Numbered from the stretch's first letter, positions 1 through 29,857 are shown. The stretch: 64,000 nt of DNA from Lepidodermella squamata (GCA_047495785.1 JBLDXI010000033.1:1612001-1676000); one strand, 5' to 3'. Translations and numbers: made by a program. Notes: a model not told the origin generated them from the sequence alone.

Positions 1-3000
1 CACAGGCGTATTTAGCGCCAGGTAACATCTCTTCTGGCCTACAGCCTAATTAACAAAAAATATATTAAATTAAGGTGGCTTTTCTAATTCTTACACATTG
101 GTGGGTGACTCCATTGCCCGTTCTGCTGGCAGGTAGTCACCGATTTTCCGATGAGAAGTGCACCCTCCAGGCAGAAATAGCGGGTTGTAAAGCCGACTTT
201 GTTTGACCGAGTGTCGTAGACAGCGTTCGGAAGCTGGAGAATATCGCCACAGTCCACGGCAACGCTGCAAGTAGCCATTTCATTACTGCCCCATGTCCCA
301 TCTTCAGTACATTCAATGCTGAATTCGCGGGTGTAAGATGGGGTTACGAAACTTGGCAAACACTTGACATCGATTCGAGAGGCTGGAACGCCTCGCATGC
401 CATTTTGAACCGTATTTGCCAAATTTAAAGGCGGGCAAGTAATTCCTGGAAATAATTAAAAATAATTAAATTAATTTCCAATATTTCAGCCAACTTACTT
501 TGACCGCAATGCACTACGTCAACGTGCATGCATGGGTGACCGTGAAAATCGATGACGTAGATTCGAATGTAACGCGATATGAATGACCACCCTCCCAGGT
601 CCCACCACACCACTTGGCTAGCATCTGTGTTGGCATCAAAATGCTTGATCCCACCGGTAGCCGGGTCGAAAATTGTCCGCCAGATGCGGCCGTCATGGCT
701 CTTTTGAATCGCGAACAGAGTGACGAATTTTTCGATTTGACGATGGCCCTGGATGATCAGGCCTTTGACCAGGTAATGCCCGCCTAGGTCGACCTCGACG
801 AACGGCATGTCACCGTCACACTCGGCTGCACACCAAATGCGCCCAGCCCCAGCACCAAGTCGGGCCTTATCAGGGGTGTAACGTTCGAGTAGAGAAGTTT
901 GAGAGTGGCAGTAGTCGCCGTCCACTGTTGGTGAGTCGTAGAGATAATGCGAGGAAGGGGATGGCTTGCGGCATGAGGGTGCGTCGAATCGATGGGCGCT
1001 AAGGTGGCTAGAGGCCGCATATGAATGCGAACTCGACTCGGTCGTCTCAGAACAAGTCAGCTCAGCGGGCACTGAAAATATTTTTTAATTTTAATTTTAA
1101 TTTTAATTTTAATTTTAATTTTAATTTTAATTTTAATTTTAATTTTAATTTTAATTTTAATTTTAATTTTAATTTTAATTTTAATTTTAATTTTAATTTT
1201 AATTTTAATTTTAATTTTAATTTTAATTTTAATTTTAATTTTCAATACTCACTCATGCAAGCCCAAAACACGTGTAGGTACAGCACTTCATGAGGACAAC
1301 GGCTGTATCGATTCGAGCACAACGAGGCAAGCAGCTGTTTTGAGGCCGTAACATTGCAGTAAGGCTTAGCATCGCACATTTGACTGAGTGTCGCTAAAAC
1401 ACTTTCGTAAGGGCATCGCATTTCGACGCCGTATTCATCAATCGGGTTCGAACAGTTGCACGCGAATTCGCCGACCATGCCGACGCGGCCGTAATGAGCC
1501 GATACGACCTTGATTTGCTGGCCGTAATGACAGTTCAGCATGTCAAATTGGCCTGAACATATTTTAGCTTCGTAAATGTGCTTTTTCACAGGCGTCATTG
1601 GCGCAGTTCCACAGCAGTCTTCGTCAACTTGACCATCGCCATCGTCATCTACTCCATCGCTAAAAAAATTCGAAAAAAATTCGGAAAATTGATTGAAAAA
1701 TTAAAAAGAAAATACCATAACTCTTCCTCAGCTCTACTATCGCAATCGTTGTCGATAGTATCTAATAAAATTGAGGTAATTCACTCTTCAACAAAATTAA
1801 GAGAGAATACCACACGATCTGAGCTGGGGACAGGCTGAACAGAATGTTGGCTCACTCTTTTGAAAAATGAAATATTTAATACAATTTATTCGATTTAATT
1901 TTTCCTACCGGGTTCAGATCCATACCAGCGGGGTAAGCGTAAGATTCGCGATCAGCGTAGCCGTAAACTATCGCCATGAAAGGAACTTTAGTCGAATGAA
2001 TAATGCGATGGCGCCCGGGTTGGATGTGAATGTAACCGCAACTGTATCCGTCATTGCCTTGGACCTGGGACCATCCATCCCCAGGTATCAACAGACCATC
2101 GACTACAAAATCGTTGCCAACCCCAAGAGAGTCGGTTGGTAGCGCCATCATCACTGAATGAACGTAGTTTTCATTCGGGGTAAGGCCGGCATAGGATGTT
2201 GTTGAAAAAATGTACTGATGCTTAAATTGCTGAAAATTTTCCAAAGATTTTAATAAAATTTTGAAAAATCTGATTTTTTTTTACATTAACTGCAGGAACA
2301 ATGGTCATGCATGGGTCGCCTTTGCCCTCTCGATCAGTTAGTCGTTGCTGGCTTAGAGAAAATTGAGCAACCAGGATCGGCTTGTCAGCGGTTATGTAAC
2401 CGCATCTAGGAAATTTTGCTTAATTATCAAACATTTTCAGAAAATTTCGAGTCTCACGTTGTCGAGGGTATTCGAAGTAGAATCCATTGTCCGGCCTGAG
2501 AAATATTGTATGTTTCCGGGTCAAGGCCACGAACTTTAATGTGAGTTTTGTCTTCCGACGCGACAATTTTGAAATAGTCGCCACTTGTCCTGCCCGGGAA
2601 AGGAACGGTGATGAATTCCGTCCCCCACGACTGAACCGGCGGCATTTCATCGACGACATGATCTCGCGAAACAAGGCCCGGCTCGATATTAGTCCGAATA
2701 TTGCCCGCATAAACTGCGAGTTTGTGATTTCCCGTGATCAGCGTCCCGCTTAGGTCATGCTTCGCCGGGCTCTGGATTTGCATGGCTTCGTATTGGAGCA
2801 GGTGAACGGTGAATGACTGGCCGTTGGTGTAGGTCTGGAAGTCCCATGTGATCATCAGTGGCAGCTCATCGGGCATTCGTTCTGGTAACTGGAATGTAAC
2901 ATCGGTATCTGCCTCGGCGGCTACAACAGCCAATTGATTGTAATTTACGCCTCCGCCCCATACTACAACACGATATTCTCGGCCGAGGCTCGAAGTCGGA

Positions 3001-3930
3001 AAAGCCAAAAATCTAATAAACAGAAATAGTGAACAAATGAAATTCGTTTTTATTTAATTATTTTCAATTAAAAGTTTCGAACAATATGAAAAATTGAAAA
3101 ATCAGGAGAAAATTAAAAAAATTTTAAACATTATTTTACGTATTTTATAATATAAATATTTTTCATATTTTTTATAAAATTTTACTCTGTTTGAACTTAC
3201 GCATCGTTAGTATATGTTTCTTTGTTGTAGCCGAAAACGCTGACTGGTTTATCAGCTCGAACAACGACCGATTTCATCTCCTTTCCAGTGCCAGTGATTC
3301 GAAAATCGGGAGGTAAGGTGAATAGGCGCACTTCGCCCGGGGCGAGGCGGAAGACTCGCGGCTCGTATTTACTGAAACGAGGCGTGGATAGCACCACTGT
3401 GGTCGTATCCACCTCATGAGTCGCCGCAACGTAGACTTCAAGCGGCAAAAATTGGGGCTTATCCGAGAAATTCTCCTGGAAAATCACGACGAATTCGACG
3501 CCTTCAGTCTGAGATGGAGCTAGATTTAAAACAATTCTTTTACAAGAAATATGTGTGATATTTTTACTAAATTACCGCAATGAGACATATTATTAATTGA
3601 AGCCTCTGATATTTTTTTGAAAAAATTAACAAACGGATTAGTTAAGCTGGGCGTTGTGCAGTCGGTTTGTTTCAAATAACAGCCATTTGTTGCGAAATTG
3701 TAGGTGAAACCAAGACACGCCGAGTTGAATCGGCAGCCATCAGCGCAGGAATAAATGTCAGTTTGTGATGAATTCAAGTAATTTCCCGGGCAATTGCCCT
3801 CGATTTTTACGAAATCCGTGAGTGTTACAGTGGCTTTTGCCGCCATTGGTGGAAGTTGGTTGACGCGAATTTGAGCATTGCATTCAATGGCGAAAATTAG
3901 TAAAATTATTATTTTTAACATTGTGTCCAT
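1..3930 (-). CDS. Secreted multidomain protein, multi-exon, 3' end runs off the left edge: signal peptide, PAN/apple, IgGFc-binding (FCGBP N-terminal) domain, SUEL/Gal-lectin, F5/8 type C discoidin, sushi/CCP repeats
   Basis: Co-linear minus-strand ORFs: 3526-3930 (MDTMLKIIILLIFAIECNA signal; C..C...C.GFTY...CYLK PAN), 3197-3487/2454-3008/1876-2244 (FPTSSLGREY, DHVVDEMPPVQSWGTEF, YGYADRESYAYPAG = FCGBP_N), 1242-1598 (LNC..GQQIKVVSAHYGR...CDAKPYC = SUEL), 425-1072 (VDLG...VKGLIIQG...SRYIRIY = discoidin), 84-422 (sushi C..G.W). Short GT-AG introns between them. Confidence 0.85.
1081..1242. repeat. Perfect hexanucleotide microsatellite (TTTTAA)n, about 27 copies, filling most of an intron (1073-1252)
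   Basis: Seen directly. Flanked on the minus strand by donor A|GTGAGT near 1252 and acceptor TTTTCAG at 1073. Confidence 0.97.
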
Positions 3931-5425: not shown

Positions 5426-7810
5426 ATGCATATTCTTCAAATGACAGCGCTGTCCATCCTCATTGGCTTATTCTGCATGGTATCACTGTCTGAAAGTAGA
5501 AAGCCGGAAACCATGTCCATTCTAGTGCTTATCCCAATAACCGGAAATGAGCCTCAGAATGGCGATGGGTGTCGTTACGGAGCCCAAGTCGCATTTGACA
5601 GCATTAATTCTAACCCTGGAATTCTGCCGAACTATCATCTGGAACCCGTGTACACCGACGAAGGGCCGGGCGCGTTTTTCTCACCTCGACAGACTGTGCA
5701 GTTTCAACGAAGATTCGAAGCAAATACGAGTAGCCATCAATCTCCGCTACTTATCGGACCACTTTTCTCCACCGGAGGCGTTTCTTTGGCTGGGATGGTT
5801 CATCAGCTGAACATGGTCCAACTAGCGATTGGAGTTAACACACCACAGATCACAGGGAATCGCAGACTTTACCCCAACATCTACCGTTCTCGAATCACGG
5901 GAGAATTAGTTGCTTATGCCCAAATGCGCTTCATAAGAGACACTGCAAAGTGGAGTAGATTCGGCATTCTGACATCTGTCGTCAACACAGCTTTCGATAC
6001 TGCAGTCGCAGTTTTCCTATACAAAGCAGCAAATGCTAACAATTTCGACGTAGCCTACTTTGAGGCTGTAATCGACATCACTGACGAGACAATGCAGGCG
6101 ATAAAAGCTTCAGACGTCAGAATATTACTGCTTGAAACAGGAACATCACCCCTGATCACCAAGCTGCTTTGCTTAGCTTACAAGTACGGTCTAACCGGGC
6201 CCAGATACATTTTCGTGCTGCTCGCTGCTGCTTATTTCGAACCGATTAGCTTACCTAATATCATACCAGTTACACCTGGCTGCACGAAAAGCATCGTAAT
6301 TCAGCAACTCGGTCAATCAATATGGTTTGGATGGTCTTTTGGCCCGGCGCCAGTTTTCAATTACCCGATCGTTAGTACTTCGAATGGTCTCGACGTTAGC
6401 GCCTTCGAAAATTTGTATGCGAATGCTACGAAGGGGATCCCGCCAAGTGACTACAGTCGTAGATATTTATGCCACGATACAGGACTTCATGCTGCTCTAG
6501 TTCTTGATGCCACGGAGAAGAAACTCGCGGAGAGGAACATGTCTCTTCGGGATTACGCGTATTCTCCTCGCGAGGTAATGTTGGTTTTGAATGAGACCAT
6601 CCTCGCCGTGTCTTACGTTGGATTTCGAATCGGCAAGTTTCAGTACTCTGCAAGGGGTGAAATGGACTCAGAACCACAGGTAGCGTTTCAATGGCAACAG
6701 CCCAATGATATCAGAGTTTTAAACGAAGTCTCGCTGAAAATTGGATCATCACTCTACAACTTCTCGAGTTACCAGTCGCGAGTAATTCTTTCTCCGAGTT
6801 GGATAACGAAAGATGGAATACCTCCTCAGGATGAACCTAAGCTTATACTAGAATCAAAAATAATCCCCAAAGAGTTCTCCTGGTCTGTCGTTGCCGTTTC
6901 AAGTTTCCTTGCAGTCGTGCAGGGCTGGTCACTGGTCAAAAGATTCAAAAATGACGAATTATTCGAGAGCATTCTAAAGGGAGTCTTGCTGTTAGGCTGC
7001 TGCTTCGTAAATGCTTCATCCTGCTTGTTTGCATTCTCTTACCCTCGAGGCTCCATTCTCCCATGCATCTTTCAGCGTTTAGCCCCGGTTTGTGGAATAG
7101 CATGCATTGTAACCTACCTGTTTATTAGAATCAAAACGAAGCGTAGAGAAATGAAGCGAGAGAGGGCTAGCATGACTGCAACCGCACTCACTGTAGGAAG
7201 CGCCATCTCCCCGCGCCGTCTTTCTCGAGTATCAATGGGCAATAGCAGGGGGTCGATTTCTCAACGTGATAGCAGTTCACTTATGGTTCCAAGCTCAACG
7301 ACTAAAACACTGTCGAACAATACAGGGGACATTTCAGCCAATGTTTCGGTTGATAACCTGAGCATTGAACCGATTTCACATGCCAACTCCGCAAAGATTG
7401 CTGGTTCGATCCTCTGCGGAACTGTCATTTTGTTAGCTCTGTGGAACTCAAACGACATTCCTGCATTTGAGAGCGCGGTGGTTTCTGACCAGTACGATGA
7501 ACTAATCGATACGAGAGTTATCACGGAAGAAGGAAGATGCGTCTCTTACCACGAAATTGCTTGGATTATGGGTATTTTGATGGCTTATGTCGTAATTCTG
7601 ACTTGGAGTGTTTTCTCAGCAATCGCTGTTAGAAGACGTATGGAACCTCTAGAGTCCGGATTTCTCTTCAATACGCTGGTAATGTTGATCGCGGCTGTCA
7701 TGATTTGCTCTATTCTTAACTCACCGGTGGGGAAATCTATCACTTTAACTTGCGTTTCGATGGTTATTTCTATCGGGGCTACGGTTGCAATAGTTAAGCG
7801 ACCTAACTAA
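5426..7810 (+). CDS. Intronless class C GPCR-like receptor (GABA-B-like: Venus-flytrap/ANF-receptor ectodomain + 7TM, no Cys-rich domain, almost no C-tail)
   Basis: 794-aa ORF with signal peptide, IN..PGILPNYHL motif, YPNIYRS, AYKYGLTGPRYIF, seven hydrophobic segments and an ECL2 Cys (EEGRCVS). Confidence 0.85.
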   Translation: MHILQMTALSILIGLFCMVSLSESRKPETMSILVLIPITGNEPQNGDGCRYGAQVAFDSINSNPGILPNYHLEPVYTDEGPGAFFSPRQTVQFQRRFEANTSSHQSPLLIGPLFSTGGVSLAGMVHQLNMVQLAIGVNTPQITGNRRLYPNIYRSRITGELVAYAQMRFIRDTAKWSRFGILTSVVNTAFDTAVAVFLYKAANANNFDVAYFEAVIDITDETMQAIKASDVRILLLETGTSPLITKLLCLAYKYGLTGPRYIFVLLAAAYFEPISLPNIIPVTPGCTKSIVIQQLGQSIWFGWSFGPAPVFNYPIVSTSNGLDVSAFENLYANATKGIPPSDYSRRYLCHDTGLHAALVLDATEKKLAERNMSLRDYAYSPREVMLVLNETILAVSYVGFRIGKFQYSARGEMDSEPQVAFQWQQPNDIRVLNEVSLKIGSSLYNFSSYQSRVILSPSWITKDGIPPQDEPKLILESKIIPKEFSWSVVAVSSFLAVVQGWSLVKRFKNDELFESILKGVLLLGCCFVNASSCLFAFSYPRGSILPCIFQRLAPVCGIACIVTYLFIRIKTKRREMKRERASMTATALTVGSAISPRRLSRVSMGNSRGSISQRDSSSLMVPSSTTKTLSNNTGDISANVSVDNLSIEPISHANSAKIAGSILCGTVILLALWNSNDIPAFESAVVSDQYDELIDTRVITEEGRCVSYHEIAWIMGILMAYVVILTWSVFSAIAVRRRMEPLESGFLFNTLVMLIAAVMICSILNSPVGKSITLTCVSMVISIGATVAIVKRPN

Positions 7811-8292: not shown

Positions 8293-8609
8293 ATGAAAAA
8301 GCAAATTTACAGTTCACTAGCGGCTCTCTTACTGCTGAATTTCTACCAGGGTTAGACGAGGGACTTTTTTCTACCAGATCGCTTTTTACTTTATTATCAT
8401 TTTCAGGGGCCCTTTCGTGTCCGAAAGCACCCGCATCACCAAACGTTAAAGTAATCGTTCACAAATCGACCCACCACCACACCCGGCTGGAAACTTCGGC
8501 CGAAAGAGAGGCTGCTGATCCTGAGACCGGCTCGTCATCAAGTGCCAACAATCCACCTGCAGCCGAGGGAGCTCCGAAGGGCAGATATCTGCGAGACTAC
8601 TATGGATAG
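8293..8609 (+). CDS. Small secreted Cys-start peptide P1 (2 exons: 8293-8350, 8407-8609)
   Basis: MKKQIYSSLAALLLLNFYQG|ALS-CPKAPASPNVKVIVH...NNPPAAEGAPKGRYLRDYYG*; 56-nt phase-1 GT-AG intron. Confidence 0.75.
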
Positions 8610-8779
8610 AAATGATAAAGTTTCCGTTTTCAAGTAAAATTGAGCAAGTTATGTGAGTATATGGGTGTAGTTGCACAAAGTTACATGAGATTCGTCCAAC
8701 TTCACGTTCGGGTCGTGAATATTTTCCCAAATATTGCGTAATTAACACTCAATTAGCATCCTTTTATTTGATTTAGACC

Positions 8780-9257
8780 ATGAAAATCGGCATGCTCTTA
8801 TTCTATCTTATCAACTTGTTTGTCATCGTCTACTTCATGAAAGGTATATTGATTCGATTCCACACAACCTCAGACACAACTGATTGTTTTAGGCCACGCG
8901 AATGCTTGCACAGGTTCGCCGCCTCAAGATGTATTACTTCAGATAAACACGGTCGGATTTGTAAGTAATTTTACATGATTTTACATTTGTTTCGCTTGGT
9001 AGGAGAAAGAGACTGCTGAAATTAAGTCGAGACGTTTCTCCGGCAGTGATTCGGCCGCCCGTCCGTCAAATCCTGATGCTTTCAGAGCGTCGCATAGTGG
9101 TAAGGATGATATTATCTAAACTCTAAACTTTCGATCTGCTCAACATACTTGCGCGAATCTTCTTCCAGGTTACCAACTTGCAGCAGCTGACCCTTGGTAC
9201 AGGAAGCCGCGAAGTTTCAAAATATTTGATCCAAGACAGTACGCATCTGATGACTAA
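8780..9257 (+). CDS. Small secreted Cys-start peptide P2 (4 exons)
   Basis: MKIGMLLFYLINLFVIVYFMKG|HANA-CTGSPPQDVLLQINTVGF|EKETAEIKSRRFSG...SHSG|YQLAAADPWYRKPRSFKIFDPRQYASDD*; introns 8844-8892, 8961-9002, 9100-9168, all GT-AG and frame-compatible. Confidence 0.7.
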
Positions 9258-9572
9258 TGACTAAAGTTACTGGGAATCTTACAATCAAAATAAAATGAAT
9301 GATCCGAAGTGCTATATTTTGTCTAAACATACCCATAGGTGTTAAATTTGTTGGCAATAAAGTGGAAGAATTGCTTGAAAAACTCTGAAACCTTAATATG
9401 CTTCCGGAAACATCAAATAAGACGTGAAAATACAATCTTGAAACAGTTTTGGGCTTCGATTTAAAGAGTTTTATTCTATCCTGAAGGCATATTAGGAAAT
9501 TCGAAGGTATCTCATTAAGTGAATTAATGATTTCCCTCGGATAGCAGAAAGTTGTTCGAACGATCATCGGCA

Positions 9573-9876
9573 TCAATGCGTTTGCTGTTGACTCGCCGAG
9601 TTGGGGCTAATATTCGAATAGTCGATGCTTCCGTTGCCAAGTAAATCCGTCGGAACAGCTGATTTCGGGGGGTCAGTAACCGGCGCTTGATTCTTGTAAC
9701 CGGCGGTCGTCATCATCGGCGGTATTGGACGCGGTCGTGATCCAGGTGGACATGTATAGGATTCTGTTCAAATTATCGTTTACTATAGTTTAAGGCGACT
9801 AAGTTTTCATTTTTTTACCTTTAAGGGCTACGAATACGAGGAAGCAAATAATGGACGCAGTAATCGTAGGTTTCAT
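9573..9876 (-). CDS. Small secreted Cys-start peptide P3 (2 exons)
   Basis: MKPTITASIICFLVFVALK|ESYT-CPPGSRPRPIPPMMTTAG...GSIDYSNISPNSASQQQTH*; phase-1 intron G|GTAAAA...AACAG. Not in the ORF track. Confidence 0.75.
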
Positions 9877-10442
9877 CTTTCTGCAGATATTAGATTATAG
9901 CAGACTTTTATCAAAGGCGTTTGAAAATACTGATTTATTCCCAGCGAGACCTGGCTATAATTAACGATTCAAGACACAAACCAACTTGCGGCCTTTTCCA
10001 AATATGTGTTGTGAACTATATACAACTCAACTCCGGGCTCATATTAGTTCCGTGTTGGTATAAGTGTATAAGTGGACAAAATTTGACAAAATATGCAAAT
10101 AAATGTTTGGTGTTACTGAAGGTCTTATGAACTCAATCCTGAAGAATTTTACTAGCTTAATGGGTATTGATGCCAATATTATCTATTTCGTTTTTAAAAT
10201 CCTGTCAATTGCTGTGATTCAAATGTCACAGCACTCGTATTTTCAAGCCGACTTGATGAAATTATTTTGTTGTTAAAATAGTATCCTGGATATTTGCTCG
10301 CTACATTTTATTTGTGCACCTGATTTTACAAGCTGGAAAAATTGACTACTTCATTATCAAGATTACAGCGAAAAATCATTAAATAATGGACCAGGCACCT
10401 AGAATTTCTCAGATCTCTGCGTTATCGCAGTGGCAGAAGGTC

Positions 10443-10724
10443 TTAATATTGGTTCGAATAGTCTGAGCGACCGCGGCCTCGTCTCACCGGCGGTTCGTCA
10501 TCGTATACAGGATCGTAAGGTGAAAGTCGCCTGCCTTTGGCTCCTCCTGATGCTCCTGCGGCCGGGTTGTTGATCGCGTTGATGAAGGGAGAAGGTGGCG
10601 GGCAAGCTTCGGCATCTGTGAAAAAAATAAACTATTTCATTGGATTCATCATGTTAAGACAGATACCTTTGCTGAGGGAGAGCAAAGCAAAAAGAGCGAC
10701 CAAGCACAAGCTGATAATTTTCAT
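10443..10724 (-). CDS. Small secreted Cys-start peptide P4 (2 exons: 10724-10667, 10615-10443)
   Basis: MKIISLCLVALFALLSLSK|DAEA-CPPPSPFINAINNPAAGASGGAKGRRLSPYDPVYDDEPPVRRGRGRSDYSNQY*; phase-1 intron. Confidence 0.8.
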
Positions 10725-11640
10725 TTTTGCTAGCTACCAAAGAAAGTGATTATTACAGGATGAATGATATTTTCGTGGATAAAAATGAGTATGAGCGCGG
10801 AGGGAATACATGATCAGACTATTCTTTCCACTTCTATTCGAAGTTCAGGGGATAACAGTCTAGACTGCTGGAGAAACCCGAGATTCATTGGGATGCAGTA
10901 AATAGGACTTTGTGGTGGCCTGGAAGTGGGAGAAAAATTATCACAAATAAATAAAAAATTGATGAAACAAGCTCAATCTTTTAACCGTTTAACCAAAAAT
11001 TGTTACATTCGGCGAACCTACTTTGAGTAGCCGCGATGATGGAAACTGTCTAGCGGTCTATCATTATGCTCTTTCTGAAGACGCTTGTCTAGAACTTCCA
11101 AGCCCCGCATACATTATAACACTTCTGGCTCCAGTGTAAAAGAAAAGAGGGGGACACTTATTATACCCCGCAAGCTTTTTATTTAGCTTGCGCACCTTTT
11201 AGTTGAAAGGGATTAGCAACAAGCCTTTCGCTGATTGGCGAATGATGACAAGAGTTCTTGAATATGATAGCAATTTCCGGTTGAATTTAACAGCTTTCAG
11301 CACTCAGTTGCCTTCGTATGCGTCGGCACTGCCATGGTATCAGATCTCCTGCTTAGGAGCTGATTTGGATCTACAGGATCCACATAAAGGTGCCCCGATA
11401 TTTCTGAATGGAGATAAGACGGGAGTGGCACCGCCGTGCGCATGAGAACAAATTCAGGAAACATCCTGTTGGTCAGAATCAGCTTGGACGGACCTCTCAA
11501 CTCTCAAAAGCGCTCATCCTGCGTTTGCATAAAGAACAAAGATAAACAGACCATGAAAACAGTTTTAACGCATTATGAGATTTTATTAGCGTTGATTGTA
11601 TGCGGCTATATCGTGACATCGGTTATCAATTGATAGACTG

Positions 11641-11907
11641 TCAGTAGTTATTGCTGAATCCAGCGTAGCCACCGTTGTCGTCGTCCTGACGATAACCGCC
11701 GAATGCGCGACCTGCTTTCTTCGGCGGAGCCACTCCCGGACCCTTTCCGGAATTCCTAACGAGGTTCACGCCAGGAGGTGGACAAGCCAATGTTCCTGAA
11801 ATGGAAATAATCGATGCATTTTATCAACAAACTTTTATTGTTTCTCTACCTTGAATAATAACAAGTAGGGCAAAAATGGCCGAGAAAATTGCTGCAGCTA
11901 GATTCAT
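11641..11907 (-). CDS. Small secreted Cys-start peptide P5 (2 exons)
   Basis: MNLAAAIFSAIFALLVIIQG|TLA-CPPPGVNLVRNSGKGPGVAPPKKAGRAFGGYRQDDDNGGYAGFSNNY*; phase-1 intron. Confidence 0.82.
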
Positions 11908-12629
11908 CGTGAAATGTTTGAATATCGGACCGTGAATTGTAAAATATCCAAAAAAATACGAATAATTTGACCTTTTACGTAGAGGTAATAGGATTCTTTT
12001 CACGCAGCACCACATATTAGTCTAGCCTATTGCGATATTTCAATTAGTACATTATGCAGAAGACGTTTTGCAATATATACCCTATCTAGCAATCTCTTAG
12101 AGTCTATTTCCGAAGTAGCGGAGATGAAATGATACAAGCTAGGGTAATGGCGAAGTTAACTGTCTTGGTGTGATCTTATAACCTAAATTATGAATCATCA
12201 CTTGGCAAAAAATGCAGTGATGATTCATAATTATTTGCAACAGCAGCAGCGTAGCTGCTACAGTAGCGCTACAGTAGTACGGCATTACCTCTGGTTCACA
12301 CAAAGTGATATCCGGCACGGCTCTGTGCCGGAACCAATGCTAATTGATAACGCTTCGAATTTTATGTCAAATCAAAGACATCCGTTCCATGTAGTCCATA
12401 TCCTCAATATCCAATCCTAATAGATTTTAGGTGATTCCGTGTCGATAAACTTCAGACTTCGGGTTCCGCAATCCTACTGCTGAGCAAATATTCTTTCTAA
12501 ATGCTACTTCAAGTTATTCTGCATTCAGCTTCGAAGAGAGAGCTTCTCGAATGAAGCCCGCCCTCAAATTATTCGAGAGAAACTGGCATTACTCTTAGCT
12601 TTATTGCTCCACTGTTTTTAACCGCAATT

Positions 12630-12867
12630 TTAGTACATTGGCGGCTCAGCATCGTAGCCAGGGCGCTGCTGGTCGTATGGGTAAGCCTGCTTTGCGTTGT
12701 AGGCTCTACCTCCATTATTGATCATGTTCAGATTGGGATCGGGCGGGCAAGCAATAGCTAAACAATATAACAAAATACTGAAAGCATTCATGATTGGGAT
12801 GAACGGTCTTCTCACCATAGCATAGTACCAGCAGAGTAAACAACACGACCAAGTAAAATTGCTGCAT
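12630..12867 (-). CDS. Small secreted Cys-start peptide P6 (2 exons)
   Basis: MQQFYLVVLFTLLVLCY|AIA-CPPDPNLNMINNGGRAYNAKQAYPYDQQRPGYDAEPPMY*; phase-1 G|GTGAGA...TTTAG intron. Confidence 0.82.
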
Positions 12868-13452
12868 GATCAAATTCCTTAGCGATAATAATTAAATTGA
12901 ATGCTGCGGCGATAAAATGTGAAGAATTGAATCTCTGAACACTTTATTTTCAAATATGGGCCAATTATCAATTCCGATCATGACCAGACTTCATGCCGCG
13001 TCAATTTACGGCTGCCGACTTACAAAAAATCCCCGCGCGTTTCGAACAGAACGATGATTCATCCGAAATTCGTTAAGCTATTTCATTGCATTATGCAACC
13101 GCAAATTGATGCGTGACGAATATTTTGACGTTTGTCGAACAGAATTCCAGACAAATTTATAGCGAAATGGATGAACAGTTCGGACCAAATTCACTAGGTG
13201 TTGACTACAATACCACGAACGCAAAATTTCAGAGATATCGCAGGCACCTCGGTTTTCTAACCTTTTGTAATTTAAAACTGAAAATAAATTTCCCACTTTG
13301 TCAGCTCATTTATTTATTGTTATAGCGTAAAGTTGCTTAGTTTATAAGTCAATTGATGATTTCCCTGAATGCTCTACATGATTAGCTTGCGATATTTATG
13401 GTTAAATGGAAATGAAGCTGACTAGTGTTGCGTCCTTCGATTCATAGTGATT

Positions 13453-13688
13453 TTAATAGTTCGGTTGGCCGAAGTCATTGTCATAGTCGTTCCTGTAGAC
13501 CTGGCGACTACCAAAACTGCGACCATTGCTAATTCCCGGATTCCTCACAATGTTAACGCCAGGCGGAGGGCAGGCGGTGATCACTAGATAAAAACAATGA
13601 AGCAGTGAAGCTCTAATGAAATTAGCTTACCAGTAATGATCAACATCAGCACGAACATCGATAGGAACAAGGCGCCAAGCTTCTGCAT
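13453..13688 (-). CDS. Small secreted Cys-start peptide P7 (2 exons)
   Basis: MQKLGALFLSMFVLMLIIT|VITA-CPPPGVNIVRNPGISNGRSFGSRQVYRNDYDNDFGQPNY*; phase-1 G|GTAAGC...TCTAG intron; close paralog of P5. Confidence 0.82.
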
Positions 13689-14198
13689 CTTCGATAGGTT
13701 AAATTCTCTTATCTTATCCGAAGAAAAAAGACTCAATGACGATTTGAGAAACACTCAATGGCTTCATTTAGCATTGGAACTACAATCTCTATTCAGGTCA
13801 TGTTTTCTAATCCTTGTCTAAATCCATCTAAAAATTCCATGTCTAGCCAGAATACTCAGTGACGAGATCGGTTTACAAACCGAGACTCGATTAACATTAA
13901 ACATTTTGGGCTACGTTCGCCTAATACTGATTCAGCAAGTTGTTGTATGGAGTTCTGATGGGATCAGACCTGAAGAAGGCAATGAAACACGAAGGTTCTG
14001 GAATGTTCCGATAACTGTGCCTTATGAATGTAAAATGCTTGGTTAGTCGTTACTCGTCACTGTTCACGGTGCGATGAATTGAAATCCCCAGTTGAAAACT
14101 TGGATAGATCGAATAATAATGCGACTTGCGAACCATTTTCAAGTTTTATTAACAACTCCGATTTTAAGATAAAACACCTTCTTTGGGGGAACACTGAA

Positions 14199-14477
14199 TC
14201 ATGGGTATTGCATAGAAGGATCGTCGTAATCTGCCGTATTGGCAACTCTATTGTCAGTTCTGCGAAAAGCAGGCTGTCTCGTGTTTATCGTGTGTCCCAG
14301 CTTCCTGGAGACTTGAACCACAACATTTGACGGTGGAGGGGCTGAACATCCAGAGACTCCTAAAAATTATCACACATAATCAAGTTAACTACTTGATATT
14401 CTCTGAAATCACTCACCCGTGTCCGAAGTCAGCAAACCGAAGAGACAGATGAAAGAAACGGTGACGTGTGTAATCAT
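14199..14477 (-). CDS. Small secreted Cys-start peptide P8 (2 exons)
   Basis: MITHVTVSFICLFGLLTSDTG|VSG-CSAPPPSNVVVQVSRKLGHTINTRQPAFRRTDNRVANTADYDDPSMQYP*; phase-1 G|GTGAGT...TTTTTAG intron. Confidence 0.72.
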
Positions 14478-14636
14478 GCTTCGGATCCGCAATTTAACGA
14501 AATGTGGCGGTTCCTATCTGCTATTAGCAAATGATCCATTATGTATTCCAATCAGGTAATCCGATTGAGGTCTTTCCTCTATTCAGATATCGTAACAAAT
14601 TCCCCTATTTGTTCCTGTTTGACAGCTTCTTAAAAC

Positions 14637-15071
14637 ATGGAAATCAAGTCGGTTACGTTGAGCGTAATTGTCGCGGTATCGTTTGCCTTCATTGACTGTA
14701 AGATAATGCTATGTTTTAAATTCGGTCTGAATTTGAGGGTTTAAGATGCGTCGGCCTGTAAGACAAAATCAATGATTCACGGAGGAGGAGGAGAAGGACG
14801 TGGTCCTCGAAATATGCCAGTGTTTGACGACTCGCTGATTGCGGACAATGGGGGCTACGGCAGCCAGCCAACGGCCTTCGATCAAAGCCCCTATGGCCAG
14901 CAGCCTCCAAGCGTCTACGGTCAAAGGCCAAATTGGTTCTATCAACAGCCTTTTAATGGATATGGGCAACAACCTGCTGGTTTCGATAAACCTCCAAGCA
15001 ATTTTTACGGCGGCAATATCAGGCGCCCGCCCCCTCCGAGGAGAGCCATCAGCCGCTTCAACAACTACTAA
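14637..15071 (+). CDS. Small secreted Cys-start peptide P9 (2 coding exons), G/Y/Q/P-rich tail
   Basis: MEIKSVTLSVIVAVSFAFID|YASA-CKTKSMIHGGGGEGRGPRNM...YGQQP repeats...RFNNY*; phase-1 T|GTAAGA...TTAAG intron. Confidence 0.8.
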
Positions 15072-15406
15072 TTCAAATCATATATTACTATCCTTTTGGT
15101 GAGCAATAGATTGCTCCTTGCAGCTCGAGGTATCTTGAAAAGATCTTTCAAACAATAAAGCTCGATCTGAAGTGCTAGATTAATGCAATAATTTCCAAGC
15201 GATTTATTGAGCGCTGAAACGGCAGAAAACATTTTATATCGCAACGAACTGAGGATGCGAAGTTGAGTCATCGCGAATTGATTGAACGGAAATTAATTGC
15301 GCAAAATTTTATCTTTTTGTATTTTATTCTGCTGGTTAAATTCGTTATATCGGTGTAGAGATGGTACACTTTGAGCATGCGAATATGAATGCTTCGCAGT
15401 CAAGGT

Positions 15407-15679
15407 TCAATAAGCGTTTTCAAAAGCAAAATCTCTGACATTTCTCCGATTATCCTTGAGACCGCCGTCGTACCCCTCATCGCCAGAGAATGGCGCCCCA
15501 AAACTTCTTGCTTTCGGAGATTCGTTAGTTCCCGGATGGATCATGGTTTTAGATTTACACGCCTTGCTTACTAAATAGATAGGTAAGTTGTTGATCAAAT
15601 CGAACTCTGATAAGTAAAACTTGTTACCTTCGAAAACGGCTATCATAGCCAAGATCATACATAAAATTGGCCGCTTCAT
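15407..15679 (-). CDS. Small secreted Cys-start peptide P10 (2 exons)
   Basis: MKRPILCMILAMIAVFE|VSKA-CKSKTMIHPGTNESPKARSFGAPFSGDEGYDGG...FENAY*; phase-1 G|GTAACA...TTTAG intron. Confidence 0.8.
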   Translation of the reverse strand: MKRPILCMILAMIAVFEGNKFYLSEFDLINNLPIYLVSKACKSKTMIHPGTNESPKARSFGAPFSGDEGYDGGLKDNRRNVRDFAFENAY

Positions 15680-15874
15680 TAATCCTGAGAAGTTCTGCAA
15701 AAAGTATGATATGTTTAGTGCTGGGTGTGGAAACCAGATCGTACTGTCTGGGCAATTCGTGCCTGATTTGAATTCACAATTCAGGAGCGTGAGTCTGCAT
15801 TCTTCGCCAGTCATATTTTCAGCAGCATCGTCGGTTAAATCCTTATTTTCCTTGTATATTTAGCCCAGGTTGAA

Positions 15875-16151
15875 ATGATTCGTGCCATCCTATCGCTACT
15901 TTTCTTTATGGTCGCATCTACGTTGGTATTCCAAGGTAAAAAGATATTAGTTGTTCTTGGAAGTTTCATCCTTTCTACCTACCTTTCTAGGTGCCGACGC
16001 TTGTGCAACCAGAACAATGATTCACGCAGGCACGAGGAGTCTGTCTTCGGCGGGTTACCAAGACCAGTACTCAGCCGCATATCCCAAGCCAATAGCCGAA
16101 AACGGCCCCAGTGATCCACGGTTAATGAGAGATAACTACAACAGCTATTAA
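15875..16151 (+). CDS. Small secreted Cys-start peptide P11 (2 exons)
   Basis: MIRAILSLLFFMVASTLVFQG|ADA-CATRTMIHAGTRSLSSAGYQDQY...RDNYNSY*; phase-1 intron. Confidence 0.8.
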
Positions 16152-16546
16152 TCCTTATGCATGGTGTGAGAACAATCATCTTTTGATTTTCAGATTTGTC
16201 GGGGATTTTAATCATCTGAAATAAATCCTGATTGTCATTGAATGGAAGCGTTCTGCAATCGGTATTTGTTGGGAAGATTAGCTTCCTCGGCAACATTGAC
16301 TTCACAAGCCCCTATGGACAATTTCATAGCAAAAATTCAACTGAGTGCATTATTCAAAGTTTATTGCTAGAAGGTGAAATCAATTCACGGAAATATTAAG
16401 CTGGATTATAGAGTTTTTGCATATAGCACGGACATATCTGCCCATACCTGTGGGTCAGCAAGTTTTGAAAGCAGGATGAAGCTAAATCAGATAGACTACA
16501 AAAGCTATAATTGGTAATGTCCTAAAAGAAAATCATCCGAGACATT

Positions 16547-16987
16547 CTACTGGGCATTCGGACAGGCGCAGTAGCATCCTGGGCGGACGGTGTAGTCGGA
16601 TGAGCTGAACTCGATCGTTGTTTCGTTGGGCTTGAAGAAACCGGCGCCGTCGTGCTCTGGGCGGCCTTGAGGTCCGTTTCCTTGACCCTGCTGCTCACGC
16701 TGGTTGTTGCTACCGGCTTGCTGTTGGCGAGCACCCTGCTGCTGGTTATTGGCATTATTGGTCTCGTTGAACTTGGGCATATCGGCGCAATAGCACACGC
16801 ATTCTTCGTATCTCAGCCACTTTGGAGCCGGCATTTCGGGTCTAGGGGAAGAGGATGAGGCGTCGACCCCAGCTCGACCGCTAAAACCAGCAGACAGGCG
16901 GCCAGCTTGCACATTGCCCTGACCTCGGTTGTCAGCGAAAACGCAGGCAACAGCCAAAACAGCAGAAATGATCAAAAGGCGAGACAT
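16547..16987 (-). CDS. Single-exon secreted orphan protein with two C-x-C-x-C motifs separated by an N/Q-rich linker
   Basis: 146-aa ORF, signal MSRLLIISAVLAVACVFA, motifs ECVCYCA and GCYCACP. Confidence 0.75.
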   Translation of the reverse strand: MSRLLIISAVLAVACVFADNRGQGNVQAGRLSAGFSGRAGVDASSSSPRPEMPAPKWLRYEECVCYCADMPKFNETNNANNQQQGARQQQAGSNNQREQQGQGNGPQGRPEHDGAGFFKPNETTIEFSSSDYTVRPGCYCACPNAQ

Positions 16988-17766
16988 GCTTGAGGGTTTT
17001 AGATAGCTTTAATAGTTTAACGTAGAATTTTAATTGTTGCTTTGGTTCGATGATGTGGATGGGCTGAAATCTGCCGGTTATATAGGGAAATTTGTCTCGA
17101 TTAACCTGGCGCCTTCGCCAAGCATTTGTAATAAACACGCCCTCTTACCCACGTTTCTCTGCATTTTTTCTAAAGGCAAGTCGCAAGCATGACGTGTACA
17201 ACCTTTTTTCATGTAAAACGTTAGCAACAGTTATAGTTTCATCAATGAAGATTACCTGAAAAGCCGTATTAGTGTTCATCACGAAGGAGTTTATAATATA
17301 ATAAAATAACGTTTCCGGTATCTTTCGAGGTGTATAACCTCTAGGAAGAGTATAATTTCAAATAATTTGTGTTTCTTTTTCAGAGGAATGTATCTTTATT
17401 TGTCGAAAAAGTGCTATTTCATCCAACGCTGCCTCCAATCAAGTTTAGCCGATCGCCAATTTCGATGCAAATACGAAAAATCTGACGAATCCGATGATCT
17501 GTGCAAATCTTGCGATCAGGGCAGCCGACACCCTGATATTTGACAATGTCTGCTGTCAGAATATCGGACGCCAAGTGGATGAGCGAGAGCCAAGCAGACC
17601 TATCCTTTTGAAGCCATTTGATTTTAAATTCATGTATCAGGCATGAAGTTTAGTGGCGAGACTTGCGACCTGACATGAATGTTGATGATCCGTTTTCTGG
17701 GTCTTTAAAATCTCAAAAGTTATGTACTTATCGCATCAGTCATTTCATAAACTGTAAGCGCTCATA

Positions 17767-18046
17767 ATGATGGCTATGATAAAACTGTCCATTTGCCTGC
17801 TTGTCGCGGTGCTCGTTTTTGAAGGTAACAAACGATGAATAGTTCACAGTCGATAAGATGTCTCTTTTTGCAGGTTCATACGCATGTCCGCCGGCCGATC
17901 AAATGGTTCAAGGGGGTGCTAGATCCCTCGGATATAACCCGCCGGCTTACGAGCAGCAAGATTTTGTATTCAGGGGTCAAAGGCAAGAGGGTTACAGACC
18001 CCCGCCATACCGAAGACCATCCAGCAGTTTCAACGACTACGAATAA
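17767..18046 (+). CDS. Small secreted Cys-start peptide P12 (2 exons)
   Basis: MMAMIKLSICLLVAVLVFEG|SYA-CPPADQMVQGGARSLGYNPPAYEQQ...SFNDYE*; phase-1 G|GTAACA...TTTGCAG intron. Confidence 0.82.
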
Positions 18047-18427
18047 ACACGCTTATTCTATAACTAGTCCGTTAATTATGAATTCTGATTATAATGATGT
18101 CAAATTTGACGGATTTCTCAAATTGTGAATTGATTAATAGGAAAATACAATAATAGGAAAAGATGAATGCAATGCTTCCTGTTAGCAGATCGGGACCATG
18201 TTCACTTGAAAATTCTGACTTCAGGTCATAATCGATGCTGAATAGGCTGATCAAAAAAGCAAGTCCGCGTAAGTCCAGAGTATACATTTGCATGTTGAGG
18301 TTTCAAGATTTGAATGTTGGCGAGACATCCGAAAGAGTGAACATGCTTTGAATAACCTAGTTGGGTAACCCAGCTCTTGAAGCAAGAGAGTTGTTTTGAA
18401 TTTGTTTATTTCGATTTAAATTTCAAT

Positions 18428-18727
18428 ATGATTTGGATCGCAAGACTTCTTGTATTTTTGACCGCCTTCTTCTACATCCTCAGAGGTATCGCACAGAAAG
18501 GGGGTTATACATATCCTAACATGTCCTATTAATAAGGTTCAACAGCTTGCTTAATAAATAACTGGACGAGGCCCAATGAGCAGATGATACAAGGAGGCGC
18601 GAGGTCGATGGCGGGAAATGACGGACTGCCATCTAATGGACAGGAAGAGCTGAACGTTCCTTCAAGGTCGGGGATCAAACGCCAACGAGTCCGGGAATTT
18701 CCTGATAATTACAGATATTATGAATAA
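18428..18727 (+). CDS. Small secreted Cys-start peptide P13 (2 exons)
   Basis: MIWIARLLVFLTAFFYILRG|STA-CLINNWTRPNEQMIQGGARSMAG...FPDNYRYYE*; phase-1 intron; shares QM(I/V)QGGARS with P12. Not in the ORF track. Confidence 0.78.
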
Positions 18728-21674: not shown

Positions 21675-23945
21675 ATGACTCTGATGTGGAAGACATTTAT
21701 TATCGTTCAAGCATTCGGACTGGCTTTCGGTTCGGTTCCTGAAAAGCCATTTAAGCTGAAAGTGTTGACAATTCTGCCATTCACTGGAAATCCGGGCTAT
21801 GAAATGGACAGATGCAAGCTCGCGATAGAAATTGTCCGCGAGCTAGTCAATAACCGAAACGATATTCTTGCGAACTACCAGGTGGAAAATCAATTTTTCG
21901 ATGAATCAACTGTCGGCTCCTTAGGCGTTCAAACTGCAGTGCGGCATCTTCGTGAGAACTCTGAAAGCAGCCGGAATGGATCAGTAATTGCTCCGATCGT
22001 TATGAGCAGCTTCTTCACCCCTGGTTGCAAGGCATGGGGTAATGTTGCCGGATACATGAATACCGTCACGGTCGTCGGTTCGTGTACAGCGCCAAGCCAG
22101 ACTGCTAGGCGAGACTCATATCCGAATATGTATCGAGTCAGAGCTCCCGGGGATATGTCGTTGATGTCCCGTATCGCATTCATAAAACAGATGACCTCGA
22201 TTCGTAAATTAGCGATCGTGACTCATCTGAATTTGAACAGCTACAGTCTGGAGTCTTCGAACTACTTCTACGACGCTGCTAATAGAGCCGGGCTTGAAGT
22301 CACAACTTTCGATGCTAGCTCTGATTTGAATGACGATTGGATATTGGCACTCAAGCGGTCCGACATACGAATTTTCAATTTTGAAGTAGCTGAACCTGCA
22401 TCAGTCGTGTTGTTTCTTTGCCAGGCGTATTCAAACGGCATTTACGGGTCAAGATATTTATTTTTCTTCCAATTGCTCGCATATCCTAATCCAGCAATTA
22501 TCGCTGAATCGATCATTCCCAAGGGATGCTCGCGAGAAATTTTGATGAAACAACTGCAGATGGCTTTATTCGTTGGTTCTTCTTTTCCAGCTCTGGTACC
22601 GCCACAGGGTCGAAACTCCCTGGGTATGACATTCAGTGATTTTGAGAAAGAATGGCGGGAAAGGACAAATGGCATTCCTTCACCAGGCGATGTCTTACGG
22701 CATGTGTGCTTCGACTTGGCAATGGAGATCGTTCTTGCTCTCGACAAAATCGAAGAAAGACTTCAAGCTAAAAACATGAGCTTGCTTGATTACCCAGCAT
22801 TCCCTAGAGAAGTGATGATCGTCACAAATGAAACTGTGCGTGGAATCAACTTTACTAGCTTAAGATTTGGCAGCTTCCAGTATTCGCCCCGTGCAGAATG
22901 GGATTCCGAGCCGCAACTTGTGACTATGTGGAACCCGGCTAAAGGGCAGATATTGAGTTACAAGGTCACTTTCGCCCCCAATGCAACTGATGTCTACGAC
23001 TTGGAGTCGTATTCCGTCGAAGGGATAAACTCGATACCGGCAGGCTTTATCCCGAAAGATTCTGCCCCAGAGGAAATGTCTCTCGACGGAGTTCCCAACT
23101 CAGTTTTCATTGTTATTACTGTTCTTTCGGCGGCGGTTTTCGTTGGCAGTGTTTTGTTACTTTTTAGAAAGAACATGTTCGAATTGAGCACATCATCATA
23201 TCTACTGCTAACCATCTGCTCATCCTTTATCAGTGCTGCATCCGTTTTCATCATCTTGCCACCTTATCTTCAAAGTGATGTAACCTGCGCGTTTGGTTTG
23301 ATCCTCATTTCTAGCGGGATCCCACTGATGTATGGATTCTTGTTAGCCCGTATGTGGGAATTTTCGAGATTTCTGAGTCGTCAAAGCTTCGCGAAGATTG
23401 ATAGGCGCAAAACACTTCCAAAGATAGTCAAGTTCGAACCAAAAATGAAACGGAATATTTTAGCAGCCTGCAGCTTCAGTGCTCTGAATTTGGTCATCGT
23501 TGTTGCTTGGCTAGTTTCGGATGCTGTGGTAGTTAACATGGCCCGCGAAGGCCGACGTCTATATCTCGATGCAGAAGATGTCTATTTGCTGATTAAATCG
23601 GTTTCGTGCAGTTCGAGCTTTTTCAGTAGATGGGCCTGGACGCTGGCGATCCTCAACTTGGCCGCAATTTTGGCGGCTGGATTTTTGATACTCAAAGTTC
23701 GCTCGCATCCTCAACTGCCGTTCCACAACATGAAGAGGTGGTTCCTCGCGGTAATTGTGTCAAACAGTTTATTCCTCGCAACCTGCGTCCTGGTTTTCAT
23801 CATCAACTCTAGTAGTTCAGTCTGGTGGGTTAATGTTACAATATCTATCGGACTTCTACTTCAATCGGCTTCTGTCTCTGGAATCATCGGTTTTGAGAGG
23901 CGAACATCGCAAGTCATGGTTACGATAGAGCCTGTTTGGAATTAA
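21675..23945 (+). CDS. Intronless class C GPCR-like receptor, paralog of 5426-7810
   Basis: 756-aa ORF; signal peptide, VNNRNDILANY, YPNMYR, AYSNGIYGSRY; shares NMSL.DY...PREVM and FQYS.R.E.DSEPQ with the first receptor; 7TM. Confidence 0.85.
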   Translation: MTLMWKTFIIVQAFGLAFGSVPEKPFKLKVLTILPFTGNPGYEMDRCKLAIEIVRELVNNRNDILANYQVENQFFDESTVGSLGVQTAVRHLRENSESSRNGSVIAPIVMSSFFTPGCKAWGNVAGYMNTVTVVGSCTAPSQTARRDSYPNMYRVRAPGDMSLMSRIAFIKQMTSIRKLAIVTHLNLNSYSLESSNYFYDAANRAGLEVTTFDASSDLNDDWILALKRSDIRIFNFEVAEPASVVLFLCQAYSNGIYGSRYLFFFQLLAYPNPAIIAESIIPKGCSREILMKQLQMALFVGSSFPALVPPQGRNSLGMTFSDFEKEWRERTNGIPSPGDVLRHVCFDLAMEIVLALDKIEERLQAKNMSLLDYPAFPREVMIVTNETVRGINFTSLRFGSFQYSPRAEWDSEPQLVTMWNPAKGQILSYKVTFAPNATDVYDLESYSVEGINSIPAGFIPKDSAPEEMSLDGVPNSVFIVITVLSAAVFVGSVLLLFRKNMFELSTSSYLLLTICSSFISAASVFIILPPYLQSDVTCAFGLILISSGIPLMYGFLLARMWEFSRFLSRQSFAKIDRRKTLPKIVKFEPKMKRNILAACSFSALNLVIVVAWLVSDAVVVNMAREGRRLYLDAEDVYLLIKSVSCSSSFFSRWAWTLAILNLAAILAAGFLILKVRSHPQLPFHNMKRWFLAVIVSNSLFLATCVLVFIINSSSSVWWVNVTISIGLLLQSASVSGIIGFERRTSQVMVTIEPVWN

Positions 23946-28806: not shown

Positions 28807-29857
28807 TTATTTCTTAGCCATTTCCTGCTCCATCTCGATCAGACGCTTAACACCTTCGTACATGTCCTGGGCGCATTGAACTTCGGAGAGGCCGAGACGA
28901 CGCTTGTTCGAGATGTCGTAGACACCACCCTCAGATTCCGAGTGCTCACCGTGGATTCCGCGGCAGTCGATGTGGTACTGTTCCAAGAGCTTCTTGAAGT
29001 CAGGATGGTTGATAGCATGAGGGATAGCAATGTGCACCGAGGCGCGCATGCCAGTTCCCAGATTGGTCGGGCAAGCCGACAAGTAGCCGAAGTTCTCATT
29101 GAACTGGAATCCCAGCTTCGAGCTAAGTTCGTTGACAGCACGAGCGAGACGGGTGAAGACAGCCAGGATATCACCGCCGGGTTGCATGGAGATGATTCGC
29201 AGCTGGTCTTCCTCGTTGACCCAGACCAAGAAGGTCTTGCTGTCGTTGTGGTAGATACCACGACCCTCTGGCCATTCGCGGTTGATACCAGCGGCCTCGA
29301 GGAAACGATCACCCTTCTTGAACAGGAAGTGGTCATCAACAAGTTGTTGACGGGTCTTCTCATCCATGCCGGAAAGAGGGTAGTAGTGGCCCTTAAGGTC
29401 GCCGTCCAGAGTGGTGAGGACACCAACAACGTTCTTCTCGATATCGATACGCTCTTGCTTGGTCAGGGTTGGCGTCAGACCGAATCCCTTCAAGTTGCGG
29501 GCGACGCGAATACGGGTCGAAACGATGTACTTGTTGTCCGGGTCAGGGTTGGTGACCTTCAGGTGGCTGGGATCGAAGTCAGCCGGGTGCTTATCAGTAG
29601 CTTTGTACGGCTTGTGGTAGTCCTCAATGACTGCGTTGAGGAGAGGTGCGAAGACATGGTAGCACTCCTCATCGCCAGCGTACAGGCCGACACCCGAATC
29701 CTGGTTGACAACACCCGAGTTGATGACCTCCTTCAATCCAACGCCGCGGGACGACTTCTTGTCCTTCAGCTGGTCGAAAATCTCTTTCGTGAGATACTTG
29801 CGAAGGAGGGACTTGTTGTTGTCAGTCCAGGTTGGGTATTCAAAATTGGCAGCAGCC
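28807..29857 (-). CDS. Arginine kinase domain 8 (terminal exon, true stop)
   Basis: SGVVNQDSGVGLYAGD, STRIRVARN, GDRFL, WVNEEDQLRIISMQ, CPTNLGT, RGIHGEH, YDISNKRRLG; acceptor TTTACAG. Confidence 0.95.

Follow-up and report, generated by a model that had tools for sequence, protein, structure and literature searches.

In the current analysis, we describe a family of 13 small secreted-peptide genes, P1–P13, clustered at positions 8293-18727 of a 64,000-nucleotide (nt) stretch of the Lepidodermella squamata genome (JBLDXI010000033.1:1612001-1676000, from a 121-Mb assembly). This stretch is referred to below as the window, and all positions are counted within it. All 13 gene models were rebuilt from sequence and are confirmed as a genuine family of small secreted-peptide genes. 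At a probability of roughly 0.55, we favor the reading that they are tandemly duplicated genes at a single locus that encode secreted precursors of signalling-type peptides with a covalently linked Cys. Signal peptidase would cut just before the lone Cys of each precursor, yielding a Cys-first chain of 39–104 amino acids (aa) that would lack a stable fold and is rich in Pro, Gly, Ser, Asn, and Tyr, with two conserved modules joined by a variable linker and a basic site before the C-terminal module. The lone Cys would then enter an intermolecular disulfide, giving a homodimer, a heterodimer, or a tether, and a short peptide with Tyr as its last residue may be freed by a cut at the basic site.

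The shared gene architecture is the first line of evidence. Twelve of the 13 genes have two exons and P2 has a tentative four, and in every gene the first intron is a phase-1 GT..AG intron of 47–58 nt. It follows a hydrophobic signal exon of 52–64 nt (58 nt in seven genes, 61 nt in three, 52 nt in two, and 64 nt in P2), and the only Cys of the mature part is encoded by the fourth codon past the split codon in 11 genes, by the third in P6, and by the fifth in P2. A cut directly before this Cys satisfies the -3/-1 signal-peptidase rule in 13/13 members; six signal peptides carry an additional Cys, which cleavage would remove. Each gene has its own ATG and its own stop codon, with an AATAAA-like signal within 250 nt in 11 of them, and the strand order along the cluster is + + - - - - - - + - +, then an unrelated gene on the minus strand, then + +. 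The original prediction had placed 13 genes at these coordinates, each with a signal exon, a phase-1 intron of about 50 nt lying 3-5 codons before the predicted cleavage site, and a mature region that starts with its only Cys, and the rebuilt models agree with it throughout; the N-terminal strings and Arg motifs that it listed are each present as written, as are the tails that end in or next to Tyr. The individual models are as follows, in order along the window.

P1, 8293-8609 (+): exons 8293-8350 and 8407-8609, intron of 56 nt in phase 1; 86-aa precursor; mature part starting CPKAP and ending RDYYG, the sole member with a C-terminal Gly.
P2, 8780-9257 (+): exons 8780-8843, 8893-8960, 9003-9099, and 9169-9257; tentative 105-aa precursor; mature part starting CTGSPP, with RKPRSF inside and ASDD at the end; the least certain model, exons 2-4 being placed from GT..AG sites and reading frame only.
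P3, 9573-9876 (-): exons 9876-9819 and 9763-9573, intron of 55 nt; 82-aa precursor; mature part starting CPPGS, with the same C-terminal DYSN motif as P4 followed by a 10-residue extension.
P4, 10443-10724 (-): exons 10724-10667 and 10615-10443, intron of 51 nt; 76-aa precursor; mature part starting CPPPSP and ending RRGRGRSDYSNQY.
P5, 11641-11907 (-): exons 11907-11850 and 11795-11641, intron of 54 nt; 70-aa precursor; mature part starting CPPPGVNLVRN, with GRAF inside and FSNNY at the end.
P6, 12630-12867 (-): exons 12867-12816 and 12757-12630, intron of 58 nt; 59-aa precursor; mature part starting CPPDPNLNMINN, with GGRAY inside and PPMY at the end.
P7, 13453-13688 (-): exons 13688-13631 and 13583-13453, intron of 47 nt; 62-aa precursor; mature part starting CPPPGVNIVRN, with GRSF inside and QPNY at the end; 3' untranslated region (UTR) to about 13289.
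P8, 14199-14477 (-): exons 14477-14417 and 14359-14199, intron of 57 nt; 73-aa precursor; mature part starting CSAPPP and ending ADYDDPSMQYP; exon 1 carries a 4-nt allelic block.
P9, 14637-15071 (+): exons 14637-14697 and 14746-15071, intron of 48 nt; 128-aa precursor; mature part starting CKTKSMIHG, with a long Gln/Pro/Tyr/Gly-rich middle and RRAISRFNNY at the end.
P10, 15407-15679 (-): exons 15679-15628 and 15570-15407, intron of 57 nt; 71-aa precursor; mature part starting CKSKTMIHP, with ARSF inside and RRNVRDFAFENAY at the end.
P11, 15875-16151 (+): exons 15875-15935 and 15991-16151, intron of 55 nt; 73-aa precursor; mature part starting CATRTMIHA, with TRSL inside and MRDNYNSY at the end; poly(A) site near 16237.
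P12, 17767-18046 (+): exons 17767-17824 and 17874-18046, intron of 49 nt; 76-aa precursor; mature part starting CPPADQMVQGG, with ARSL inside and RRPSSSFNDYE at the end.
P13, 18428-18727 (+): exons 18428-18485 and 18537-18727, intron of 51 nt; 82-aa precursor; mature part starting CLINN, with QMIQGGARSM inside and KRQRVREFPDNYRYYE at the end; the top match to the family profile in the genome search.

The architecture was scanned for across both strands of the 64 kb as a strict signature, that is, a first exon that is hydrophobic and ends in phase 1, an intron 40-69 nt long, a single Cys placed 3-5 residues past the junction, and positions -3 and -1 occupied by permissive residues. Ten family genes were recovered in this way, with no match in the window outside 9.5-18.7 kb; 30 third-order Markov shuffles, which served as the control, gave no match either. 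An excess of phase-1 introns near signal-peptide cleavage sites is a general trait of secreted proteins (PMC1626468), and it is solely the conservation of its exact position that makes the intron a mark of common ancestry here. Its shortness is usual for the genome: an alpha-2-macroglobulin-like gene at 58.1-62.3 kb, with its MG2, MG4, bait, and TED domains arranged canonically, has open reading frame (ORF) blocks only 65-144 nt apart. No shared promoter words stood out upstream of the 13 genes, and the Rfam SL1 (spliced-leader) model gave no match in a search that had no working control.

The predicted products form the second line of evidence. The precursors comprise 59–128 aa and the mature chains carry exactly one Cys each, a net charge of -1 to +5, and a composition dominated by Pro (12%), Gly (10%), Ser (9%), Arg (8%), Asn (8%), and Tyr (6%). 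Mean column identity across the family alignment is 21%; no substitution is seen at the Cys or at one Arg, and a C-terminal Tyr is nearly invariant, while the Gly preceding the invariant Arg varies among members. Two modules can be written around these residues, namely C-x(2-12)-[NQST]-[MLIV]-[IV]-x-x-G..R-[SA]-[FLM] at the N-terminus and [DE]-[FY]..N-x-Y at the C-terminus, with a variable linker between them. Every motif count lies above that in within-sequence shuffles: the N-terminal module is found in 9/13 members (0.3/13 in shuffles), a terminal or penultimate Tyr in 11/13 (last in seven and penultimate in four, against a shuffle mean of 1.7/13), and a dibasic or RxxR site before the C-terminal module in 8/13 (3.5 expected). 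When P5 was modeled with AlphaFold2 from the family alignment, the predicted local distance difference test (pLDDT) score was 53 and no secondary structure appeared, and the peptides are thus predicted to be disordered, with no stable fold.

Expression was assessed using two sequencing runs that contain the window: X1, dated 2015 and listed as 'RNA?', which holds a share of 0.15-0.17 of sampled words, and X2, which holds 0.94 and is probably source DNA with two haplotypes present. X1 contigs were placed on 12728-18727, which covers P6-P13 (n = 8), with P1-P5 outside this comparison. Five of the eight members (P7, P9, P10, P11, and P12) have X1 contigs on exon 2 and the 3'UTR; the unrelated gene at 16547-16987 is covered as well, and depth is zero in intergenic bins, so X1 behaves like RNA. 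The P7 contig (13289-13584) aligns with zero mismatches and runs a single base beyond the predicted acceptor; the intron and exon 1 have the same letter at this base, the final letter of the contig disagrees with the intron, and such an end is what branching between spliced and unspliced forms would give. Contigs also lie on exon 2 of P9, at 15345-15493 on P10, and at 17882-18145 on P12, and the X1 coverage of P11 has an A-rich loose end at 16237, 13 nt past AATAAA. Further X1 contigs lie at 17444-17727, upstream of the P12 ATG, where a convincing ORF was not found; this interval may represent a long 5'UTR or a non-coding RNA.

These data bear on whether the models could be chance ORFs or decayed copies rather than functional genes. 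Such a reading could draw on the three members that have no RNA contig and on the large protein collections, in which no predicted protein matches. It is nonetheless very improbable: all 13 frames are intact and agree in the phase and position of the intron, shuffles do not yield the signature, RNA coverage in five members fits the predicted transcription units, and the two P12 alleles differ at 7 synonymous and only 2 non-synonymous sites.

That last comparison, made in exon 2 of the P12 haplotypes, is one of several that speak to the age of the family, which the original prediction had called rapidly diversifying and had proposed to check by comparing signal with mature regions. Paralogue pairs are saturated at synonymous sites, with synonymous divergence (pS) of 0.62-0.88. 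In the best pair, P5/P7, the mature part shows non-synonymous divergence (pN) of 0.23 vs pS of 0.71, indicative of purifying selection, and it is better conserved than the signal peptide (24/35 or 69% identity vs 8/23 or 35%). Taken together, the synonymous saturation, the purifying selection on P5/P7, and the P12 haplotypes argue for old duplicates under constraint that are neither recent nor fast-evolving. The family is therefore old rather than rapidly diversifying, and that part of the earlier description is not supported. Variation does reach a conserved position in one case: a P10 allele at 15410, carried by the second haplotype and also read in the X1 transcript, changes TAT to TAA in the last codon, and the conserved terminal Tyr is lost.

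The same description called the family unrecognized and lineage-specific, and searches for relatives agree with the first of these terms. A family profile, only 50 positions long, gave eight matches in the L. squamata genome, all of them cluster members, and searches of the genome with P9 alone and P1 alone gave no further copy. Among 5.8 billion proteins, none of 476 candidates scored against the family alignment, and an exhaustive profile search of 1.84 billion representatives gave no match; nor did Pfam, and the ESM Atlas gave no usable match. As the earlier account had proposed as a check, a profile was thus set against known families, and no characterized family was matched. In metagenome contigs, the P5/P7 alignment produced 104 pattern matches, of which 0 were confirmed, and two contigs of a relative, reached via an arginine-kinase match, contained no gene with the signature. 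As judged from these sequence searches, P1–P13 appear to be a single-locus family with relatives found nowhere in the collections searched. The term lineage-specific is nevertheless weaker than it sounds: an adjoining 794-aa receptor is likewise matchless at an expectation value (E) of 1e-5 in the 5.8 billion proteins, so close relatives are barely sampled and the blanks for the family are weak evidence.

With regard to function, an extracellular signalling-type role appears most likely from the pattern of conservation, rather than an antimicrobial or a structural one. Linear antimicrobial precursors, in which an acidic, Tyr-rich C-terminal pro-piece would give up a mildly cationic N-terminal peptide rich in Pro and Gly, would likewise present as a multigene family of small and divergent secreted peptides in tandem. 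Six members have an N-terminal part charged +2 to +5 (P4, P5, P7, P9, P10, and P11), five have a tail charged -1 or -2 (P5, P6, P7, P10, and P11), and eight of 13 have a basic site within the tail. The layout resembles that of the myticalins, which combine a signal peptide, a cationic peptide, a dibasic site, an anionic extension, and a phase-1 intron (PMC5577615). Entire mature chains are near neutral, at -1 to +5, vs a myticalin isoelectric point (pI) above 11; of the 11 N-terminal parts that can be split off, four are at 0 or -1 and two more at +1; and neither an amphipathic helix nor a Cys-stabilized fold is predicted. Myticalins and other antimicrobial peptides conserve the signal and have a hypervariable mature part (PMC5577615), and the pattern here is the opposite, since mature motifs are kept while signal peptides drift. 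We consider a defence role unlikely on these grounds, and signalling is favored over it because conservation falls on short mature motifs and not on signal peptides or linkers, and because charge is near neutral.

A structural role, with the peptides acting as matrix or adhesive linkers cross-linked through the N-terminal Cys and Tyr (as dityrosine or 3,4-dihydroxyphenylalanine) into an egg coat, cuticle, or glue, also strikes us as improbable. It would account for the composition (Pro 12%, Gly 10%, Tyr 6%), for reactive residues at both chain ends, and for the long Gln/Pro/Tyr/Gly-rich middle of P9, and the unrelated secreted Cys-motif gene inside the cluster, at 16547-16987, has the highest RNA depth. 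All chains are very short, and repeats are absent except in P9; the shuffles show that the conserved motifs are specific sequences and not compositional bias. Short chains and specific motifs both argue against a purely structural role. A natural P10 allele lacks the terminal Tyr, and similarity to matrix families was not found in Pfam or the ESM Atlas.

Within the signalling-type reading, the role of the Cys appears most likely to be an intermolecular disulfide. Unpaired thiols in the secretory pathway are mostly retained or paired, and a lone Cys of a secreted protein is usually bonded or modified. Since a lone secreted Cys is normally bonded, the disulfide is the likeliest role, and N-acylation of the Cys is the less likely alternative.

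Acylation would make the peptides Hedgehog/Spitz-type ligands, N-palmitoylated on the N-terminal Cys by HHAT-like acyltransferases and thereby tethered to the membrane of the producing cell. A free Cys is predicted at +1 in 13/13 members by the -3/-1 rule, and the genome encodes HHAT-like MBOAT genes in two tandem pairs (contig C13:2423208-2426160 and contig C10:333524-337200), for which HHAT is the only significant PDB match (E of 4e-15 and 3e-12) and in which the WHG histidine motif aligns. The usual substrate seems to be missing, as a search of the genome for the Hedgehog signalling domain, made without a positive control, found none; the lack of that control also tells against using the result. 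Residue 2 is Pro, Ser, or Ala in 9/13 members, which HHAT tolerates (PMC8061759). The acceptor rules for HHAT are that residue 2 is G/S/A/P/Q and not K, and that a basic residue lies within the first seven (PMC8061759); only P1, P3, and P11 (3/13) comply with both, as P9 and P10 have Lys at position 2 and eight members have no basic residue in the first seven. An N-terminal Cys alone is insufficient, and 87 human secreted proteins have one and are not known substrates (PMC8061759). The GUP1/HHAT clade also remodels glycosylphosphatidylinositol (GPI) anchors outside eumetazoans (bioRxiv 10.64898/2026.08.27.744591), so the enzyme in a genome with no Hedgehog would be explained otherwise. Lipidated ligands of this type are doubtful as an account of the family, and the disulfide is ranked over lipidation because the acceptor rules fit 3/13 members and because the clade has this GPI-remodelling role. 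A more specific proposal, that the +1 Cys is the acceptor for the duplicated HHAT-like enzymes, making P1–P13 Hedgehog-independent, N-lipidated, membrane-tethered ligands of short range with partners possibly among the greatly expanded GABA-B-like class C orphan receptors, a pair of which borders the cluster, is a long shot.

Several points weigh against the preferred reading of disulfide-linked signalling-type peptides. The cleavage site is placed by the -3/-1 rule alone. The basic site is dibasic or RxxR in 8/13 members only, and a C-terminal Gly occurs in P1 only (1/13), so classical amidation is no family feature. The contrast between signal and mature parts is reversed in P10/P11, where the mature parts are 33% identical and the signal peptides 43%. 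The motifs were defined after the sequences were in view, and paralogues are non-independent samples. On the expression side, the identity of X1 as RNA is a guess, P6, P8, and P13 have no X1 contig within 12728-18727, and no spliced junction is reported in X1, with exon 1 covered by no listed contig; splicing is accordingly supported rather than shown.

The cluster is flanked by two intronless genes for orphan GABA-B-like class C receptors, at 5426-7810 (+) and 21675-23945 (+), both with an ANF_receptor domain and 30% identical to each other; the left receptor, itself without a match among the 5.8 billion proteins, has seven hydrophobic segments as read by eye and a ligand-binding domain nearest GABA-B receptor subunit 1. 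The receptor family has 1433 first-look candidates genome-wide, so the adjacency of cluster and receptors carries little weight. When the ligand-binding domain of the left receptor and mature P7 were modeled together as a complex, the score was 0.02, a value that speaks neither for nor against a pairing. Two further receptor arrays (contigs C58:304892-342757 and C33:876007-911745), 47-49% identical to the left flanking receptor, have matching paralogue order and spacing and look like an old segmental or whole-genome duplicate. Matches to the Cys-loop ligand-binding domain number over 150 in the genome (2530 first-look candidates), and innexin and nematode cuticle collagen were not found in it by searches made without a positive control, an unusual mix. 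The genome is that of an animal other than a nematode or a sponge.

Inside the cluster, the unrelated gene at 16547-16987 (-) encodes a single-exon secreted protein of 146 aa, with CVCYC and CYCAC at its ends and a Gln/Asn/Gly-rich middle; it has the top X1 depth in 12728-18727 and no Pfam or PDB match above the curated cut-off. At 425-3008 (-), ORFs that carry F5/8 type C and IgGFc-binding-protein domains probably represent exons of a secreted protein resembling a mucin or lectin. Arginine-kinase domains form an array at 28807-42576 and 48099-49181. One of these domains scores far higher against the two-domain structure 4rf6, which we take to be an Anthopleura arginine kinase, than against arthropod enzymes; it shares 83% identity with a metagenome protein and 66% with one from a sponge (Dysidea). 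An apparent 42-nt intron in the arginine-kinase copies was rejected as an artefact, as it is in frame within a continuous ORF.

Two-exon genes for small peptides evade gene finders, and 0/13 members matched predicted proteins in large collections; with the cluster, an entire family of secreted peptides is thus gained for an animal lineage that has been little sampled. The invariant first-position Cys is rare and chemically meaningful, as either a disulfide partner or a lipid acceptor, and offers a simple, testable handle. If the Cys were acylated, P1–P13 would be the first peptide family beyond the Hedgehog and EGF ligands with that chemistry, and a signalling role would make the peptides candidate ligands in a genome with a great many orphan receptors. 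Should neither acylation nor signalling hold, they would constitute an ordinary lineage-restricted orphan family.

Among known systems, the mussel myticalins and modiocalins are likewise encoded by multigene families and share the order of signal peptide, Pro-rich peptide, basic site, and acidic tail, together with a phase-1 intron at a conserved position (PMC5577615). They differ in keeping the signal and varying a strongly cationic mature part, whereas the present family keeps its mature motifs at near-neutral charge, has its intron inside the signal-peptide coding region, and has no sequence similarity to them. Hedgehog and the Drosophila ligands Spitz, Keren, and Gurken, which are substrates of HHAT and Rasp, resemble P1–P13 in that Cys is the predicted residue 1, residue 2 is mostly Pro, Ser, or Ala, and the enzymes are encoded; in contrast to them, the family has no Hedgehog or EGF domain, consists of chains of 39–104 aa predicted to be disordered, and fits the acceptor rules in 3/13 members. 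Bacterial lipoproteins also have an invariant Cys directly after the signal peptide, but the lipobox [LVI][ASTVI][GAS]C is found in only 2/13 members (P7 and P8), the Lgt/Lsp pathway is not known outside bacteria, and the family genes are eukaryotic, with spliceosomal introns and poly(A) signals. Prohormone and neuropeptide precursors are similarly small, with a signal peptide (13/13 here), basic sites before a C-terminal motif (8/13 here), tandem paralogues, and conservation limited to short motifs around a drifting linker. In P1–P13, however, each motif occurs once per precursor, an amidation Gly is present in 1/13, no described peptide family is matched, and the invariant N-terminal Cys is no known neuropeptide feature.

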